Below, piece after piece: positions 1 to 9,852 of a stretch of DNA of 64,000 nucleotides (its first letter is position 1; every line of letters starts with the position of its first letter). The translations under genes and the position numbers were made by a program. This DNA comes from Dimorphilus gyrociliatus (lineage: Eukaryota > Animalia > Annelida). The stretch is from assembly GCA_904063045.1 (NCBI GenBank), contig CAJFCJ010000013.1:1346156-1410155 (forward strand), given 5' to 3'. The notes beneath the pieces are model-generated. The model saw only the letters and a program-made list of their open reading frames with translations, was not told where the DNA came from and searched no databases.

Positions 1-2370
1 TAGGAAATGCGACAATAATAAAAAAAAAACTCACAAGTTCAAAGTCACTATTCTCTCTTGACAAAGGTATTTGTCGGTCCAACGCTATCTGTTATTATAT
101 AAATAAATATACAAAATTAATTTTATTGTATATACAAAGAAACGATAACAATTTTAATTATTCTTTCTACTCGACATAATAATTAATTACCTTTTTGAAA
201 AATTGAAATGATAGCATCTTTTCAGCAGAAGGCCTATTTACCGGATTAGGGCAAAGCATCTGAACAATAATCGATTGAAATTCGGGCGAATAATCTAGAT
301 ACGATTAAAAATAAACATTAAAATTTTAATATTAATCAAAGTAGACAAGAATTTTGTTTGTTAATATTTGATAAAATTTCGTTTACTGTTTAGAAAATGG
401 TGTGGAATTTTTCCAGTACGTAAATCATGCCATGCGGCTCCTCTTCTTGGTAAATTTAAATTACCAGCCAATTCTAGCATAGACATCCCCAAACTAAAAA
501 GAGGACAAAATGAATATGTATTAGTATATATATATATATCTCTGAAAAACTTACCTGAATATATCGGCTTTTGTATTGAAGCTTTCATTCATAACTTCCG
601 GTGCCAAGTATTTTGGATCACCCTCTTGAAAATCCGTATCCTAAAAATGAAAATCAAAGAATATGAGTAATAAGAGTAAAGATAGATATTAAGGGGAAAC
701 ACTAAAAAAAAAATCATTGAAATTTTGTCACGTTTAACGCAATTCATCTGTCTGATAAAGCATAAATAAAAGCTTTTTCTTAGAACTTCCATCAGCTATT
801 ATATTTAAAGCTCTTATAGAGGTCTCTTTCAGTAATATGCTTTAACAAACAATACGAATAGGTTAATTAAACAAGCCAGGAAGATAAAGAAACAAGAAAG
901 AGAGTCTTACTTTGTCTGAATATAGATCGTGCATTATACCGTAGTCACCCAATTTGCAAATTCCGTTTAATTCGATGAAAATATTCTCTGGTTTAACATC
1001 TAAATGCACTAGGCTATGGCGATGAAGATGACTTAGAGCCTATAGTATTAACGAGAGAATAATGATTAAGTAAAAAAATAAAAAGTGATTAATCGACGTT
1101 TTATATTTACTTTAAGTAGATCAATGAGCCAGTAGCAAAGCTCAATCTCCGGAATTGACTGTTCCCGACTCACATATTTGTCCAAACTGGCATAGCACAA
1201 TTCTGTTTGAATGAAGAAACGTCTGTTCTCCTCCCAAGCTCGGAAAAATTTCACACAATTGGGATGAGATGGAATTCTATTATATTTATCAACTTCCCGC
1301 ATCTTTAATTTCCTATTGAAAATTCACTAATTATTTCTACGAGATAAGAATTATTACGTAATCTAATTACCTATCAAAGTTTCCTCTAAAGCAGTCTATG
1401 GTACGTTTTATGGCAAAAAGTTCCCCTGTAGTTTTACTACGAACTTTGAACACCTACAAGAGAACAAATAGTAATGGAATAGAAAACAGAAAAAAGAAGA
1501 CAAAAATCTTATCAAAGTACCTCCCCAAAAGATCCATTACCGATTCGTGATAAAACAATAAAATTTTCAGATAATATTGATTTATTTTTATTCAAGGTAT
1601 CAATAGAACCTTCTTTCGGTGAATTAAGCTTTAATTTATTCTGAATTTTAGCTAAAAAAAATTTGAATTAAGGAAAAGTCTAGGTAAACAACTGAAATTT
1701 GTTGATGGTATTACGCAATATGATAAGAAACATCACAAGATGAACGTTCCCACGCTGTTGACGCAGCGTTAACAATGCTACTAAGTTATACCACATTGGA
1801 GGTTCCACTCTCGAATTGATAAAATTAAAAGTTTTAATAGAAGATTAATTTTAACGGTTGAAAATCTGTTGATAGATATGACTAAGAAAGGATACGTGAC
1901 AAATAAGTGGTTCCATTTTTTCGTCTTTTCTGTCTCAACAGGCGGCTAACCGGCGGTGCACTTCTAATTAACTTGGGTGGTAGTTCTTGATGAAGTCTTA
2001 TTTCTTTTTCCTTAAAAAAAATAAAATATTATCCGCCATTTTGACATCAGTGATAAGGACTTGTCTTTTCGCCTAAGACTTAATTTACCCCATACGTTTC
2101 TTATTACATATTTTAGTCGCACTATAAATATATCATAGGGAATATTAATATAATAATATTAACGAAATATTTGACAGATAAACAGCCTTTTTATAAGATT
2201 TAAGACTACATATATAACTTGGAGGTGTTGACAATTTGAAGATCCTAGTCGACTTAAAATAGAAATATATCAATTTTAAAAATACATACCCTTTTCGTAG
2301 ATAGAACTTCAGGTTCCAGCAAATATGTAGGTATTGGTCTCGGTTTTGGGTTTGGCGTTTTCACGTCCAT
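1..2370 (-). CDS. PKMYT1: Membrane-associated Tyr/Thr Cdk1-inhibitory kinase Myt1 (Wee1 family); multi-exon, 3' end lies beyond the window start
   Basis: Manually spliced exons give [16 protein letters not shown]..., [43 protein letters not shown]...[18 protein letters not shown]...KADIFS|[15 protein letters not shown]. These match recalled Myt1 kinase subdomains. GT-AG introns. Confidence 0.85.
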
Positions 2371-3049
2371 TTGATAGAAAATTAGTATAAAATAACTCGT
2401 CTTGTATCAAACTGGCGCCATTTATTCAACTAAATAACTGTCCCGCACTAACTGTGGGAAGAAAATTATATCTTGCTAAAAAATAAATAACTAAAATTTT
2501 ACCTTTAATTACAAATGTTGGTTTATATAAAATATTTTATATAAATAGATACTTTTAAAAATAGAAAAATAATAATGTAGAAAAATTGGTGCTGATCTGC
2601 CGTAAAAATTTTTTTGGCGGGAAACGGGCGCTATTATTTTTGGGAAAGATTTCATTATGCCTGTGACACAGTCCAACGAGTGAAATTTTTTAATGAAGGG
2701 TCAGCTAGTAAACGATATGTATTTAATTAATGCAAGTAAGCCAGTATACATTGCGATTTACAAAAATTTATGTTACACCATCACCATTCTCCTACTGCAT
2801 TATTAATGTATTCACAACTTCATTTGACGACATTTAAGAATTAAAAGAAAGAGGAAAAGTGTTATATATTAACAAAAATAAATTAGTCTGCTACAAGGAT
2901 ACATTTTAGGCAATATGTAAATTCTTTATTAAACTAAAGCAGTATATTTTCGAATATATAACAAAACATACCATTAAATACGGAAAGAAATGGCTATATT
3001 ATCTCTAAATATATAACAGAGAAAAAAAATACAGACTGGACGAAAATAG

Positions 3050-3432
3050 TTAGCTTTTATGTAAACAATCAAATAAATTCTTGCCTTTACAAGCTGTACG
3101 TTTCCCTAAGACTGGAACTTGCTGCTTAGCAGAGGATGCCGATATCATTCTTGAGAAGTATTCATCATAGCACTGTAGTCTAGACATATTGTCTGGACAC
3201 TTAATCAACGAACTCCTCTTCTCAGTTTTCTCCTGGCACTTTTTACCCTCACAAAGAGTCTCTACAACCCTTCCAAATGGATTGAATCGATATTCTATTT
3301 AAAATGAACTTAAGTTTAGCTTTCAAACGATAACCGGAAATAAGAAGGTATCAACTTACTTATTTCAGATGCTGATAATAAAATACCAAGATTTAAAATC
3401 AAAAAAGCAAGTACAATTGGCCATTTAAACAT
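3050..3432 (-). CDS. Secreted neuropeptide-like precursor, 105 aa, two coding exons (3432-3360, 3294-3050); not in the ORF track
   Basis: MFKWPIVLAFLILNLGILLSA (signal-like) + SEIKYRFNPF-GR...EKR-SSLIKCPDNMSRLQCYDEYFSRMISASSAKQQVPVL-GKR-TACKGKNLFDCLHKS*. 65-nt GTAAGT..TAG intron keeps the frame; dibasic and Gly-amidation sites present. Confidence 0.8.
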
Positions 3433-4423
3433 TTTTTATATCTGCAACAAGTACAAAAATAATCTTATTTTCCTCGTTGAAGATAACAAACGAATATATT
3501 AAATATAACGTTAATATAAAGGAAAAATATCATTAAATAAACAACTATACCTTTGATTTGAGCAATGTTGTCCGAAGAATAGATTAGCTAGGTCTGACTG
3601 GCGTTTATATATACACAGTATTTAAGAGCATGTGTTTATATGCTGTACATTTATATCTATATCTATATATACTATATATAAATATGCATATATACTGTAT
3701 ATATATATTGGAATATATAAATTTATATATATATATATTCCAGACATCAGTCATACTCAACACCTATTGGATAAAATATATATAAACGTTTGTTATAAAT
3801 ATTCATATTTTAATACTATGGAAGACAATTTATAAAGAAGTATTTATCGACTTCAACTAATGTGAAATCCTCCAATATTATAGTATTATATAATTAAATT
3901 TGTCTGAAATCTAAGCTAATGATTTATTAATAGTGTAAATACTTTCTATATTTTTGTTCTAAATATGCTTTTTTTTTGCAAACAATCATGTTGATTATGG
4001 GTTAAATAGATAATTATAATCATTTTTATAACATATACATACAAACATACAAAGATACGTACAGTGTATACAAAATCCATTCTAAATAATACTTATTATT
4101 TGGTGTATCAATGCTTATTCTTTATTTTATTTGCATAAATTAAAGCTATGCGTTTCTCTTCTTTTTCTTTCGAAAAAATTATACATAATCTGGTACAGTG
4201 ACCTTTTGTAGAGTAAAGTATGGAAATCTATTGAAAAAGAATACTTCCTTTGAAAATAATTTAATTAAGAGCAATTAAATATGAGACGAAGGAAAGGTTT
4301 AATAAAACAAGTTAGAAGATGACTTTGTCTGTTTAAATTCCTTCATAACCAAGGTGAAATGTTTTTTAAAAGATACTTGTAAAGATATATACAATATATA
4401 TATACAGTATATATATATATATA

Positions 4424-5854
4424 CAGTCCCAATAAAATATCTTGAGCAGGGTTGTCCTTAAAGTGGAAAAAGTGAAATATTTACCTAAAATGACTTGCTT
4501 AATTATTTTTTTTGTTTAGAATGAAGGATAAGACATTTATACAACTGAATTTAAAGATAAAATTCATTTAAAATTTTTTTTTACTTTCCAGTAATTTTTA
4601 ATGACAAATTTTTACAAAAGTGGAGGAGGTAAAATTTCTGGCAGGTATTTCAAATAATGTAAAAATTCCGACTTGACTCGATAATTTATCGCATATCCTT
4701 TATTTTGGATGACAAGACGGCATGTCTTTTTTATGGAGCTATATAAATGTTTTATATAGTCTTCAGGAATCAAAAAAAATTCCTCTTCTATGATAGCTTT
4801 CAAATCCTCCAGATTTTTTGGAATTCTCTTGTAATCTCTTCATTTGAGCAATGCCCAGAGATTCTCTATTATATTCAAGTCTGTACTCTGTGCTGGCCAG
4901 TCTTTTAGATACTTTATCTTGTTTCATCTTAAAAAAGATTTAGATACTTTTGAGGTGTGGCATCATGCTCCATCCTGTTGAAAGATGTTCTCTGTCTTAT
5001 AGCAGGGAGGTAGATACTCTTTTAAAGTTGAGATATATTTCTCTGAGTCTATTGATTTAGAGCAATATGCCAGAGCTCTGGAACCATCATATTTGATGGC
5101 TCCCCAGATCATCAGCTTACAGTCTTGGGTCTTAAAACTGCTCCTGATGTTTCTTGGCTTGTCCTTGTCCTCTCATTTACATCTGACTCTGACTCTCTGT
5201 TTAGGAAACAGGTCAAATGTTGTTTCGTCGGAAAAAATATAACTCTCAAGCTCATCCTCCTTTTTTTAAGGGTTTTTTTTAGCAAAAAGAATTCTCTTTT
5301 TTCGATTCCCCAATTTTGCTAAAGGTTTTACTTTTGCCACGTAGCTTTTTAATCCATTATTGAATAATATCTTCTTAGCAGGAGATAAACTCACCTTATC
5401 TGCTATGGCCCATTGGCTATAAGCTTGTCTAGCTGTATAAAAGGGATCCTTTTTTTAAATCATAATAAGATTTCTCTTGTCTGCTTCTGAAATCTTTTTG
5501 GGGCGGCCAGACCTGGGTCTGTCCTCCATAGTAAAATATTCTTTTTTCTTTTTTAGATTGTACTGAATAGTACTGCGAGCAATTTTTAGCTCTTTTGAGA
5601 TCTTTACTTGGCTTAACCCTCTTCTGTCCAGTTCCACAATTTTCTCTCGCATCTCTAGCCTTATTTTACCCATTTTCAAAGTTTTGCAATAATTTGTTTC
5701 AAAGAATAGTCTGACAGTACTCAGGAATGTCATAAAAAATTAAAAAAGTGGGTTCCTATCTAATTAACATCTAACTTTTTGCCAGGAACAGGCATCCTGC
5801 CAGAAATTTTACCACTTTAAGGACACCCCTGCCCAAGATTTTTTATTGGGACTG
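4424..5854 (-). mobile_element. Tc1/mariner DNA transposon, full length (1431 bp), decayed
   Basis: 48-bp terminal inverted repeats starting CAGTCCCAATAAAA (4424-4471 and 5807-5854, 4 mismatches), TA on both flanks, internal transposase remnants. Confidence 0.95.
4680..5673 (-). pseudogene. Tc1-like transposase pseudogene
   Basis: HTH region MGKIRLEMREKIVEL...RSGRPKKIS; catalytic motifs IFSDET, FQQDGA, WPAQSTDLNIIENLW; several in-frame stops and at least one frameshift. 3' boundary approximate. Confidence 0.9.
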
Positions 5855-7464
5855 TATATAAATAGTGTATAGATATACCAATGTACTATATAAATTTTGT
5901 ACTGTATACAAATTGATATAAATATCTTAGAAATGTTATTTAACAGGAATGTTCATTAATTGATGCAACTTCGTATATATAACTTAGTATGTACACTGTA
6001 TGTATGACATATTTTAGAAAAATTTCTTATTTTATATATAATTATAAAGATAAAGCTTTCTTTCATCTCAACAGTTTGTCAAGCTGAATTTTTGAAATTC
6101 ATTTATAAGAATTTAGTTGTATTCTTTCCAATAACAATATATAGTATATCATCATTTTGTTAATAATAAGTTTATGCGGCATATGAACAACGCATATAAT
6201 CGTATTCTGTCTGGATTTAGTGTCACTAGCAGATTTCAGTTGATTAATACTGCTGGCAATCAAGATTATAGAAGCAGTTTTTTGTCCAGAATGGGAGAAA
6301 ACACAATTAAGAAGTTTGTAGGAGGTGTGAGGGGGAGTAAGGAGGACAGAAAATACTCTCAGTGACGTGGGAGTAAAGTAAAAACATTACGTCAAATGGA
6401 GAGTGAATTGTGTATTATTATTATTATTATTATTGTTATCTATTTAATTTTTGTATAGCTTCTTGACAATAAAAATCACTGCTTCTATAATATAATTGTT
6501 GAAGAACTAGTCTAAATAGTTTTCTTTTCATATTTAGTAAAAGCGTATTCGAATTTAAAATGTTCTCCTTCTGGAACGTTTCGGAAATACTAAGATGTGG
6601 TAGATATATTGAATTTTTAGACAGAATAAATACGTGATCACCATACGGAAAGATTAGCTTCAGTCTTATTTATGACTTATTCATCATCTGCGTTAGTAAG
6701 ATAGAAGAGACAGATAGCCGTAGAATTTAGAATGTAACATACAGCGCCGCCTAATGGTTATAAGCTATTTACAACATTACGTGTATTCATATATTAAATG
6801 TTATTCTATCTTTGTAGAATATAAGAATTAGACATATACTGATACTAATAAATATATAATAAAGTTATACAAGTTTCAATACAAATATACTGTTTGTAAC
6901 TTATGATTCGCATATTCTTTTGCCTAACAGAACTCAATACAAAATACATACGAAACTATTTATAAAACAGATGCAGCAAAAGGCATTTTTATAGAAACAG
7001 CAATAAGCAGGCAATTTATAGCCACAATTCTTAGCACCATTAAATTAATGAACTTAAACTTAAAAAAAAAAAATAAAAAAAAAAAAACAAGAATTTTGTT
7101 TCTTTTTTTTTTTTAAATTATCGTCAACTAATACTTTGGAACGGAATATAATAATGAATTCCCATATACGACACAAGCCTAACTTAAAGTATCTTTCCTT
7201 TTCTTTCTCTTATATGTGTAGGTGTGCATGTGCATATGTACTGTTATTAAATGTACAATTGATTAGTTTAAACGAATATTATGTATATAATCTATTTTTA
7301 AATTTTGGAAGGATACTTTAAGGAACAAGAAGCACGCAGCGGAAATACATGGCATTGAATTATTTTTACAGAATTCCATCTCAGCCCCCCCCTTCTCTTT
7401 TCGAACTAGACAAAAGTAAAGAAAAAAAAATGCAGTTTAAACGTTAGCAAGATTAATATTAAAT

Positions 7465-9852
7465 TTAAATGGACGTTGAATTTTCACTATCGCTTTCAAC
7501 GCCATCATCTACAAATGGTATTTCTTCTTTGTTTAAGCGTTTAATAGTTAACCAGTTTCCGGTTTTATCTCTTCCTTGAATAATTGGAGCGAGGTATTGA
7601 TAGGAGACGCTATCCTTTAAATGACAAGCTAATTTAGCTAAATTCAATTCCACTAGTATAATCTAGCAAGAAAAAACAAAAATTTATAATTAGTATTTTA
7701 CAATATAAGTAGATGTGCAATATATTTTCTACAGTATATATAGCATAGTCTATATATAAATAAGTAAATAAAATGACGTAATACCTTTCCGGAAGTGCAT
7801 AGTGCAATCGGTGTTGATGATTGTGAACAAAGTACTGTGGAGAAGACTATGCTATCCGATATTTGTTCGCAGTATAAAAAATTCGAACTTTCTATATCGT
7901 GTATATACAATTTTCCATATTTCGTAAAAACGTATAAAAGTCCTAAATGCTGACTAGCCTGAAAATACAAAAAGAAAAAAACTTACAAATAAAAAAGAAC
8001 ACTTTGTGGAGTAGAACTCTTTTTTTTTAAATAGTAAAAAGTTGATTTATAACCTGAATAGAAATAGGAAAATCATAGTAATCTGTCGTATCGTGAAAAG
8101 TAATCTCTTCAGAATGGCTGGACAAAGCGTAATTTCCGTTTTGATGAGGTCCTAATTCTATAATATATACTTTGCCGAATCGACTTTGTTTATGTCTGGT
8201 CGCAACCGCCAGAATGTTGCTTTCCTTCCTGTTACCTTCGAATTGATAACGGAAGAAATGCACTGCATGGGCGGAAATGCATTGACCTAAATTATAGTCC
8301 TGAGAAAACAACTGTACAACTCCTTCGATGTACTCCTCCTATTGATGTGAAAGAGGAAATAGTAATTATAAAGTTATAAAAAAACCATTTAATAGTAGTC
8401 TTAAGCAATAAAACAAACGCATAGAGATAAAAAATAACAATAATAAATGCAATAGATTGATATCAATACTAGAAGAGTAAAGTAAACAGAGCGAAGCGGG
8501 CACTTAAAACGTCATAGAGAGTTAATGACAGTTTAATCATTCTATAAATCATAGAAGAAATAGGATATTTAATAGTACTAGTAGTAGTAAAAATAAAGAG
8601 ATATTAAATAAATTGAGAGATTTAAGTGCTCCTAATTGTCAAAAACTCTCTATGCATTCACTTTCCGTTTTCCCTCCACCTAACCCTTCCCCCAAACTGT
8701 TATTTTTTACTTTCTCCAGCTCTCTGTCTTTTCTTACTAAAACATCTTATTCGTTTACAAACCTTTGCTACTAGCGCTGTTAGAGCAAACCATTTATTAT
8801 TAGGAGCAACTTCGAAAGATACAATCTGCATGTCGGATAATCTTTTAGCGACATTCAATACTTTTCGAGGCTTATCGTCTGAGAAGAGAAACAAATTTTT
8901 TATTTGTATGTCTATTTACTTGGAAATAAAAATAAACAATAAAAAAGAAAGGAGAGAGAAGACCCACTCCTTCCTAGTACTTACTTTTATGAACGTCCCA
9001 ATACCAAATATCATCACCAGTAATGAAAGCCAAAACATCATTGTTTATCCATAACCAGAATTTTATAGATGATTGGCTCCTTATCCTCCTCTTACTTTGC
9101 TTGTTAATTATACGGGATCGATGATAAACGACAATATGTTGTTTATCTGTTGGTTAATTAGTTACATTATCATTTCCGTAGGGGATATTGATTTGTATGA
9201 GCAGTTCCCGCATGGGAAAAAAATTAATATAATGGATAGTTACAATAGCTCCTTTCGCCACTGAATCGATATTTCCTACTATTATACTGTTAAAAATCGA
9301 ACGATTCTTTTGTATTCTTTAACATATTTTTTTGTCGTCCATAGTTTATCAATAAATATGTTGTAAATTTATGTACATATATGAATACAAAATGAAGATT
9401 AACCATAAAATGGCAAATTACTCAAGTTAGGCTTTCACTAAGCGATATTTGATATTGTATAATACAATGGTTTCCAATTAAAATTTCTATTTATTCATTT
9501 TTTCTAAAATACTTACATCTACAAGCAATAAAGTCTCCAGCAGGACTTATTTGAGCTAATTCAGCTTCTATAGTATACTTTTGAATTCTAGGTTGATTTC
9601 TTTGACTTGTAGGATCGAATGAATAAACTTGACTGTTACACGTAGTATTATTCGGTTTGTCAACTGTTATACACATATATTTATCGCTCGTTAAACGAAC
9701 ACGAGACCACGTTAGCCTATCCTTTGGTATCTTATAATCCGGTAGCTAAAAGGGAAAATATTTATGTAGTGGGTTAATAAATAAAAACAAAATATCCTTA
9801 CGTCGTGAAGTTCGAACGTTCTTATTGGCGGTGAAGGCTCATAGCCTTGCAT
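7465..9852 (-). CDS. Clathrin heavy-chain terminal-domain (beta-propeller)-only protein, about 400 aa, 7 exons
   Basis: Exons translate to PPIRTFELHD|LPDYKI...LTSDKYMCI, IKFWLWINNDVLAFIT...WYW, KWFALTAL, EGVVQLFS...ISAHAVHF, KVYIIELG, DFPISIQ, LLYVFTKYGKLYIHDIES. These are collinear with CHC residues ~1-380 as recalled. Stop at 7465 after an acidic tail. Confidence 0.8.

Follow-up and report, generated by a model that had tools for sequence, protein, structure and literature searches.

Leucokinins carry a C-terminal F-x-x-W-[GA]-amide, usually in several copies per precursor. Peptides of the calcitonin/CGRP/DH31 type combine an N-proximal disulfide ring, a helix and a C-terminal amide within ~32 to 37 residues and are freed from a precursor at dibasic sites, with G-[KR]-R at the end. 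Melanin-concentrating hormone (MCH) is a non-amidated C-x8-C ring at the extreme C terminus of its precursor. Elevenin (L11) is a single, non-amidated ring peptide of ~17 to 20 residues, and its post-ring motif, length and amidation are unlike those of the product described below. The annelid Dimorphilus gyrociliatus, whose genome has short introns, has been presented as having a "canonical" neuropeptide complement (PMC7854359). The portions of that paper and its supplement considered here include a true leucokinin precursor with several copies (...F-x-x-W-A-G-K-R), two precursors each of calcitonin-like and DH31-like peptides, dozens more for other amidated peptides, and 7B2; the calcitonin-like peptides have rings of x7 and x9, and no elevenin entry appears in those portions of the list (PMC7854359).

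The window analyzed here (the whole stretch of 64,000 nucleotides of D. gyrociliatus DNA) is AT rich (~30% GC) and has the character of animal DNA with ordinary metazoan genes; it is neither human nor viral and has no relation to toxins. On its minus strand lies an apparently unannotated protein-coding gene for a small secretory precursor of the prohormone type, whose main predicted product is a 36-residue peptide with an N-proximal ring. In outline, this peptide is like calcitonin/CGRP/DH31: it shares the ring, the helix, the predicted amide, the length and the dibasic mode of release. The resemblance concerns only how the product would work. There is no match to the Pfam Calc_CGRP_IAPP model, the ring starts from residue 6, and the end is a Leu-amide rather than a Pro-amide; unlike calcitonin/CGRP/DH31, the family to which the window gene belongs has multi-copy precursors and Leu- or Val-amide ends. 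MCH resembles the product in ring size alone, since no Pfam Pro-MCH match was obtained and the ring peptide of the window gene has a predicted amide and is followed by a further peptide. A preliminary description of this DNA, made from the sequence alone, had noted a loose likeness to kinins at the N-terminal peptide. That likeness is empty. The peptide shares with leucokinin only a short Phe-containing stretch followed by Gly; it ends F-N-P-F, occurs in one copy, contains no Trp and no F-x-x-W-[GA]-amide, and its Gly is not conserved.

Gene structure and predicted precursor

The preliminary description placed a two-exon gene at 3432-3050, joined at 3360/3294, that the open reading frame track had missed. 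Our reading of the minus strand matches this model exactly. Two exons give a 104-codon frame, the split codon A/AA (Lys) fixes the junction at 3360/3294 in phase 1, and the open reading frame lister returns only fragments of 38 aa and 52 aa. Within exon 2, the frame meets a stop two codons 5′ of the acceptor, and exon 2 therefore has no upstream start of its own. All peptide strings quoted earlier (SAS-EIK-YRFNPF-G-R, the 36-mer and the tail) are present in the translation. The features of the gene are as follows.

3604-3611, minus strand: TATA-like box TATATAAA, ~170 nt 5′ of the ATG, inferred from sequence
3432-3430, minus strand: start codon ATG, read from sequence
3432-3360, minus strand: coding exon 1, with 24 complete codons and the initial base of a split Lys codon; aligns to L003:4509-4567 in a related worm
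3367-3432, minus strand: predicted signal peptide of 22 residues, with n-region MFK, a 16-residue hydrophobic core and c-region S-A-S
3359-3354, minus strand: splice donor GTAAGT, read from sequence
3295-3359, minus strand: phase-1 intron of 65 nt, GT-AG, ending AAATAG; in-frame stops on read-through
3050-3294, minus strand: coding exon 2, with stop TAA at 3052-3050; under purifying selection
3269-3292, minus strand: N-terminal propeptide motif YRFNPF, then G-R; the preceding E-I-K spans the splice
3215-3268, minus strand: first ring unit of 16 residues, C-x4-C, plus a K-R site; the paralogues have C-x8-C, then R-R
3107-3214, minus strand: main predicted product, 36 residues, with a C6-C15 ring (C-x8-C), Y-D-E-Y-F and an end in ...V-P-V-L
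3098-3106, minus strand: G-K-R, amidation donor and dibasic site, invariant in 4/4 dinophilid genes
3053-3097, minus strand: C-terminal peptide of 15 residues, C-x7-C; Cys spacing kept in the orthologue, peptide absent from the paralogues
2925-2930, minus strand: AATAAA polyadenylation signal, 120 nt 3′ of the stop, from sequence only

The predicted signal peptide has a mean Kyte-Doolittle hydropathy of 2.95 over its best 10 residues and sites compatible with the -3/-1 rule after residues 20 to 22. It had been proposed that the first peptide follows the signal peptide directly and begins at S. The string is there; since cleavage after SAS fits the -3/-1 rule at least as well as cleavage after SA, the first peptide may instead begin at E. 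Upstream of the ATG, a short noncoding leader exon is possible, ending at a GT at 3550-3549 and joined to an acceptor AG ending at 3442; the relative's contig also has ...tttgcag shortly 5′ of its ATG.

The precursor has six Cys in three pairs, spaced C-x4-C, C-x8-C and C-x7-C in the translation, as had been described. The second pair would form the ring of the 36-mer, in which the ring and the post-ring motif read C-PDNMSRLQ-C-Y-D-E-Y (3199-3158); the peptide is near neutral (pI 7.8), and two Tyr flank its D-E pair in a sulfation-like context. Its calculated average mass is 4096.7 Da as a linear free acid, or about 4093.7 Da once one disulfide and the C-terminal amide are taken into account. 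The 2-Cys peptide reported after the 36-mer was recovered as the 15-residue C-x7-C tail. An N-x-S glycosylation sequon lies inside the C-x8-C ring (3170-3196) and is invariant in 4/4 dinophilid genes. The terminal ring unit of three more distant relatives (P0004, P0009, and P0010) also has N-L-S, at a different ring position. Given this conserved ring sequon, the product could carry a glycan instead of being a simple peptide.

Modeled with AF2, the exon 2 protein gave a mean pLDDT of 50.6 and a pTM of 0.32 with no packed domain. Helices were predicted at residues 5-13, 17-27 and 38-53, and moderate confidence was confined to the region of ring plus helix (residues 31-50, helix 38-53). A low-confidence model that lacks a compact fold is as expected for a processed precursor.

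Conservation in a related worm and in a paralogue

An orthologue of the gene was found in a related worm. A word search with exon 2 returned a single relative, P0001 (94 aa), an unspliced gene call on Logan contigs L003/L004/L005. Read on the contig, the orthologue agrees with the window gene in its start and in the site of its stop. Its signal peptide is similar and ends S-A-S-E; the donor, again GTAAGT, interrupts the matching codon, and the intron, of 163 nt, is in phase 1. Collinearity extends along the 9.2-kb contig L003 and window positions 30-7708, and the alignable islands around the gene are exactly its two exons. Exon 2 compared with the orthologue gave a pN of 0.171 and a pS of 0.706 (saturated), for a dN/dS of ~0.09; identities at the first, second and third codon positions were 0.84, 0.82, and 0.51, and shifted frames gave ratios of at least 1. 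The most constrained part is the 36-mer core, with the lowest dN/dS (~0.06), and the C-terminal C-x7-C tail evolves fast (pN 0.35). The stretch of exon 2 upstream of any internal start codon is constrained too (0.18), as would be expected only if splicing to exon 1 precedes translation of exon 2. The conserved frame, the selection and the synteny are far beyond chance; on this comparison, the gene is real.

We searched the 77.9-Mb, 349-contig D. gyrociliatus assembly (G000) for further copies. One paralogue was found, on contig C8 (L002), with an MFK... signal peptide, an 88-nt phase-1 intron and one further coding exon. Its own orthologue, P0002 (101 aa, on L013), is present in the same related worm with the same layout, and the two are under purifying selection (pN 0.19, pS 0.78). 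The paralogue is like the window gene in its two exons, phase-1 intron, N-x-S-R-L-Q-C-Y-D-E-Y core, [KR]-R site and G-K-R, but it is only 41% identical overall, its first ring is x8, a true K-R follows its N-terminal piece, and it ends ...R-I-V and stops right after G-K-R, without the 2-Cys tail. A profile of the ring unit (A2) found only these two known genes in the worm's genome; a weak third match, on C41 (L020), proved to be a class A repeat of the LDL-receptor type and was set aside. The same genome gave no match when searched with P0010, one of the distant relatives described below.

In the alignment of the four dinophilid genes (the two paralogues and their orthologues), the invariant positions are R8 (the final Arg of the N-terminal piece), the N-proximal set of four Cys, the [KR]-R that precedes the ring peptide, the core I-x-C-x-x-N-x-S-R-L-x-C-Y-D-E-Y and the closing G-K-R. 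The preliminary description had made its reading depend on conserved cleavage sites and Cys spacing in relatives; the ring-peptide sites and C-x8-C are kept in 4/4 genes, and the KR/GKR boundaries and amidation Gly given there for the 36-mer recur in the other three dinophilid genes. The first ring spans x4 in the orthologous pair that includes the window gene and x8 in the pair of paralogues, and the internal G-K-K of the first ring unit is not conserved.

The amidated decapeptide that had been predicted directly after the signal peptide did not hold up as a conserved product. The orthologue retains YRFNPF and its Arg but carries Gln in place of Gly, so that Q-R stands where the window gene has G-R. 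Both paralogue genes have a canonical K-R at the alignment position of this Arg, and cleavage here is plausible; the window gene has a lone Arg at the site, lacking the basic residue that normally stands upstream. Judged from the alignment, amidation of the YRFNPF piece is no family feature, and the ring 36-mer, rather than the FNPF peptide, is the predicted conserved product.

Relatives with multi-copy precursors

A profile built from three exon 2 proteins (A1) was scanned with HMMER against 1.84 billion representative proteins. The matches were as follows.

P0001, 94 aa, E 3.8e-42: the orthologue
P0002, 101 aa, E 1.9e-15: the paralogue's orthologue
P0003, 773 aa, E 2.3e-12: eleven matched stretches
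P0004, 282 aa, E 4e-4
P0005, 178 aa, E 5.7e-4: borderline

The distant relatives are multi-copy precursors of two kinds. P0003, P0007 and P0008 have up to 20 units in which C-x8-C is invariant, most of them followed by [FL]-D-[RKQ]-[YH]-[IV]; P0003 and P0007 have 20 C-x8-C units each, of which ~15 to 17 have [FL]-D-x-[YH], with KR between most units. P0004, P0009 and P0010 have four C-x8-C units, a short K-R-M-Y-F-G-P-G-K-R element and a terminal 36-residue ring peptide that ends ...R-F-V-G-K-R and precedes a 2-Cys tail, an order of elements that matches the C-terminal half of the window precursor. The two kinds are linked to each other by a collinear alignment of P0010 with P0008 (3e-10). On the 596-kb contig L015, the large P0010 exon has a signal-peptide exon 5′ of it and an intron in phase 1, indicating a gene structure common to P0010 and the window gene. 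The contigs of the distant relatives come from metagenome or SRA assemblies of 31 to 58% GC; among the genes that neighbor P0003, P0004 and P0010, the only recognizable sequences were retroelement reverse-transcriptase fragments.

Several features tie the window gene to these precursors. Homology to P0003 is significant (E 2.3e-12 with A1 across the 1.84 billion proteins). Across 47 aligned units, Cys is invariant at columns 5 and 14, and the x8 ring is followed by [FYLM]-[DE]-x-[YH], which in the window gene reads Y-D-E-Y. Units are bounded by dibasic sites, and the terminal unit ends in an aliphatic residue and G-[KR]-R (F-V-G-K-R or F-V-G-R-R in the distant relatives). A signal-peptide exon, an intron of matching position and phase (phase 1) and the remainder on one exon are found in the window gene and in L003, L002, L013 and L015, each of which has an equivalent of the signal-peptide exon. 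The link to the P0004/P0010 group, taken alone, is weak (E 4e-4). The window core unit aligns best to the penultimate P0010 unit (hhalign E 4.4e-4), and at an hhalign probability of 33% a one-to-one correspondence of units is uncertain.

The multi-copy precursors have 4 to ~20 units, unlike the dinophilid genes, which have one canonical unit and one reduced unit (C-x4-C in the window gene, C-x8-C in the paralogue). They also differ in their short motif, which is [FY]-x-F-G-P-G-K-R in the multi-copy precursors and YRFNPF, at the N terminus, in the window gene. From these comparisons, the window gene is probably a one-copy, miniaturized member of an unnamed family that has multi-copy precursors in other animals. 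A more specific proposal, that it is the miniaturized dinophilid form of an old peptide-hormone family, multi-copy in several lineages and acting through a still-orphan receptor, is tentative; we would give it slightly less than an even chance.

Three features of the database sequences themselves are recorded here. P0005, from a JGI metagenome, consists in part of five tandem 19-residue repeats (K-C-Q-P-H-M-G-K-H-R-C-Y-K-E-R-S-K-L-V) without dibasic spacers, in which C-x8-C is followed by Y-[KE]-E-R. At L022:1895-3821, on a contig with 3x coverage, the P0008 gene is preceded by an overlapping 187-aa open reading frame in another frame, which probably represents the N-terminal half of this multi-copy precursor, separated from the rest by a frameshift in the assembly. 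The P0010 gene is present on two contigs of one assembly, L015 and L016 (~50x and 24x), with the same neighbors and reverse-transcriptase fragments upstream; these contigs are probably haplotigs or a recent duplication.

None of these sequences led to a described family. Pfam searches gave noise only, both for exon 2 (no match even at E values up to 10, including the calcitonin, MCH, CRF and ELH models) and for six relatives. Searches of PDB sequences with profiles A3 and A2 returned nothing relevant, and no relative was confirmed when metagenome_contigs was scanned with A3. The relatives returned by word searches, for which exon 2, P0003 and P0004 served as queries, all lack names, and a cluster look-up supplied none. 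In the ESM Atlas, exon 2 had no usable match; for P0010, the nearest language-model neighbors were all neuropeptide precursors, at a subthreshold score of 0.8. A full-text literature search on the family motifs found no relevant paper. The motifs are also absent from the available portions of five spiralian neuropeptide catalogues, the kind of collection against which a check had been suggested: the published D. gyrociliatus list (PMC7854359) and four others with no true match (PMC8557429, PMC3890597, PMC6425005, and PMC5747525), which are Platynereis, mollusc, nemertean/brachiopod/phoronid and Platynereis-connectome supplements. Two occurrences of a motif in these supplements are chance strings in unrelated proteins. 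The earlier statement that the precursor could not be assigned to a known family is thus borne out as far as described families go, but it overlooked the wider, unnamed family with multi-copy precursors.

Proposed processing, alternative explanations and genomic surroundings

The explanation that we favor is that the gene, if spliced as predicted, encodes a 104-residue secretory precursor of the prohormone type whose main product, the ring 36-mer, would signal outside the cell, most probably as a neuropeptide or peptide hormone. We put the probability of this explanation, including membership in the multi-copy family, at roughly 0.6. The exon 1 signal peptide would direct the precursor into the ER, where neighboring Cys pairs would each close a local ring. 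Proprotein convertases would cleave at two places, behind the conserved K-R (3217-3215 region) and behind G-K-R, a carboxypeptidase would remove the basic residues, and amidating monooxygenase would convert ...V-L-Gly to ...V-L-amide. The main product would then be a peptide of 36 residues in which a C-x8-C ring near the N terminus leads into a helical Y-D-E-Y-F... segment and, at the other end, an amidated aliphatic residue. Of the remaining pieces (YRFNPF, the small one with C-x4-C and the tail with C-x7-C), all would be by-products or minor products. The 36-mer would be released extracellularly and act on a postulated receptor. The genome contains nine P_proprotein (P-domain convertase) loci and several Cu2_monooxygen loci, and 7B2 has been published for the species, so the standard processing route is available.

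A processed and secreted peptide need not be neural. The product might, for instance, be a pheromone, a factor of reproduction or of the egg coat, or a defense peptide of glands or mucus, cut by convertases in nonneural secretory cells; the signal peptide, KR sites, rings and amidation Gly would fit any regulated or furin-type secretory polyprotein equally well, and precursors of ~20 copies are known among nonneural secreted peptides too. We consider this unlikely, given that a family-wide C-terminal Gly-Lys-Arg is typical of amidated bioactive peptides and that the 36-mer, at a pI of 7.8, is not cationic as annelid antimicrobial peptides are; the neuropeptide precursors that neighbor P0010 in language-model space add weak evidence in the same direction. 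It is less probable still that the gene is a highly diverged member of a described ring-peptide family (of the calcitonin/DH31 type, elevenin, MCH-like or similar). Its architecture of ring, helix, amide and ~36 residues is that of calcitonin/CGRP, short peptides quickly lose detectable similarity, and the x7 and x9 rings listed for D. gyrociliatus calcitonin-like peptides indicate a flexible ring size. Against these points stand the lack of any Pfam match at E values up to 10 or of a PDB peptide match, a ring that begins at residue 6 rather than 1 to 2, the Leu-amide in place of a Pro-amide, and KR-separated multi-copy ring units unlike those of the families named; moreover, the portions of the catalogues considered lack the motifs in all five cases and already assign two calcitonin-like and two DH31-like precursors to this species.

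Six Cys within ~80 residues and helices predicted at 5-13, 17-27 and 38-53 might also suggest a small, unprocessed, Cys-stabilized secreted protein in which the dibasic sites stay uncut and the Cys pair across segments. That reading is very improbable. The AF2 model has no packed fold (pLDDT 50.6, pTM 0.32), [KR]-R and G-K-R are invariant, the third Cys pair is absent from the paralogue and the first ring shifts from x8 to x4. Such gain or loss of whole neighboring pairs supports local rings over a cross-linked fold, as do relatives in which each of the 4 to 20 KR-bounded units has exactly two Cys, which points to independent local rings. We give hardly any credence to a nonfunctional locus, that is, a chance pair of open reading frames or a decaying pseudogene. 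It would account for the gene's absence from the available part of the published neuropeptide list and for the lack of a D. gyrociliatus product of the gene in a collection of 5.8 billion protein clusters, yet dN/dS is ~0.09 with saturated synonymous sites, the locus is syntenic, and across two species and two paralogues the frame is unbroken and the start, the stop and the splice sites are preserved.

The ring 36-mer as an extracellular signal remains our preferred explanation. The window gene and its paralogue are missing from the portion of the D. gyrociliatus catalogue considered here and, within the reach of our searches, from public protein sets; the exon 2 word search of the 5.8-billion-cluster collection returned no spliced product from D. 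gyrociliatus or the relative, although a product of 104 aa is of admissible length. Short two-exon peptide genes are systematically overlooked by annotation pipelines, as this gene shows. If the peptide is confirmed, it would add a family to the list of spiralian, or wider, signaling peptides, supply a candidate ligand for orphan receptors, and exemplify how genome miniaturization can cut a multi-copy prohormone to a single copy.

The surroundings of the gene have features of their own. In the interval from its AATAAA to where conserved coding sequence of the downstream gene sets in, a 71-nt block (2773-2843) is 83% identical to L003:5297-5366 and is better conserved than the coding exons of the window gene; it may belong to the downstream neighbor as a UTR, promoter or small-exon element. 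On the other side, in the spacer between the gene and the next conserved block, minus-strand open reading frame fragments at 4600-5733 resemble a Tc1/mariner-type transposase (helix-turn-helix and DDE parts), and this stretch has no counterpart in the relative's contig. The downstream neighbor itself (30-2500, minus strand) is strongly conserved with L003:5661-8379, and its open reading frame fragments contain protein-kinase motifs, ...LGDYG among them, that by eye look Myt1/Wee1-like.
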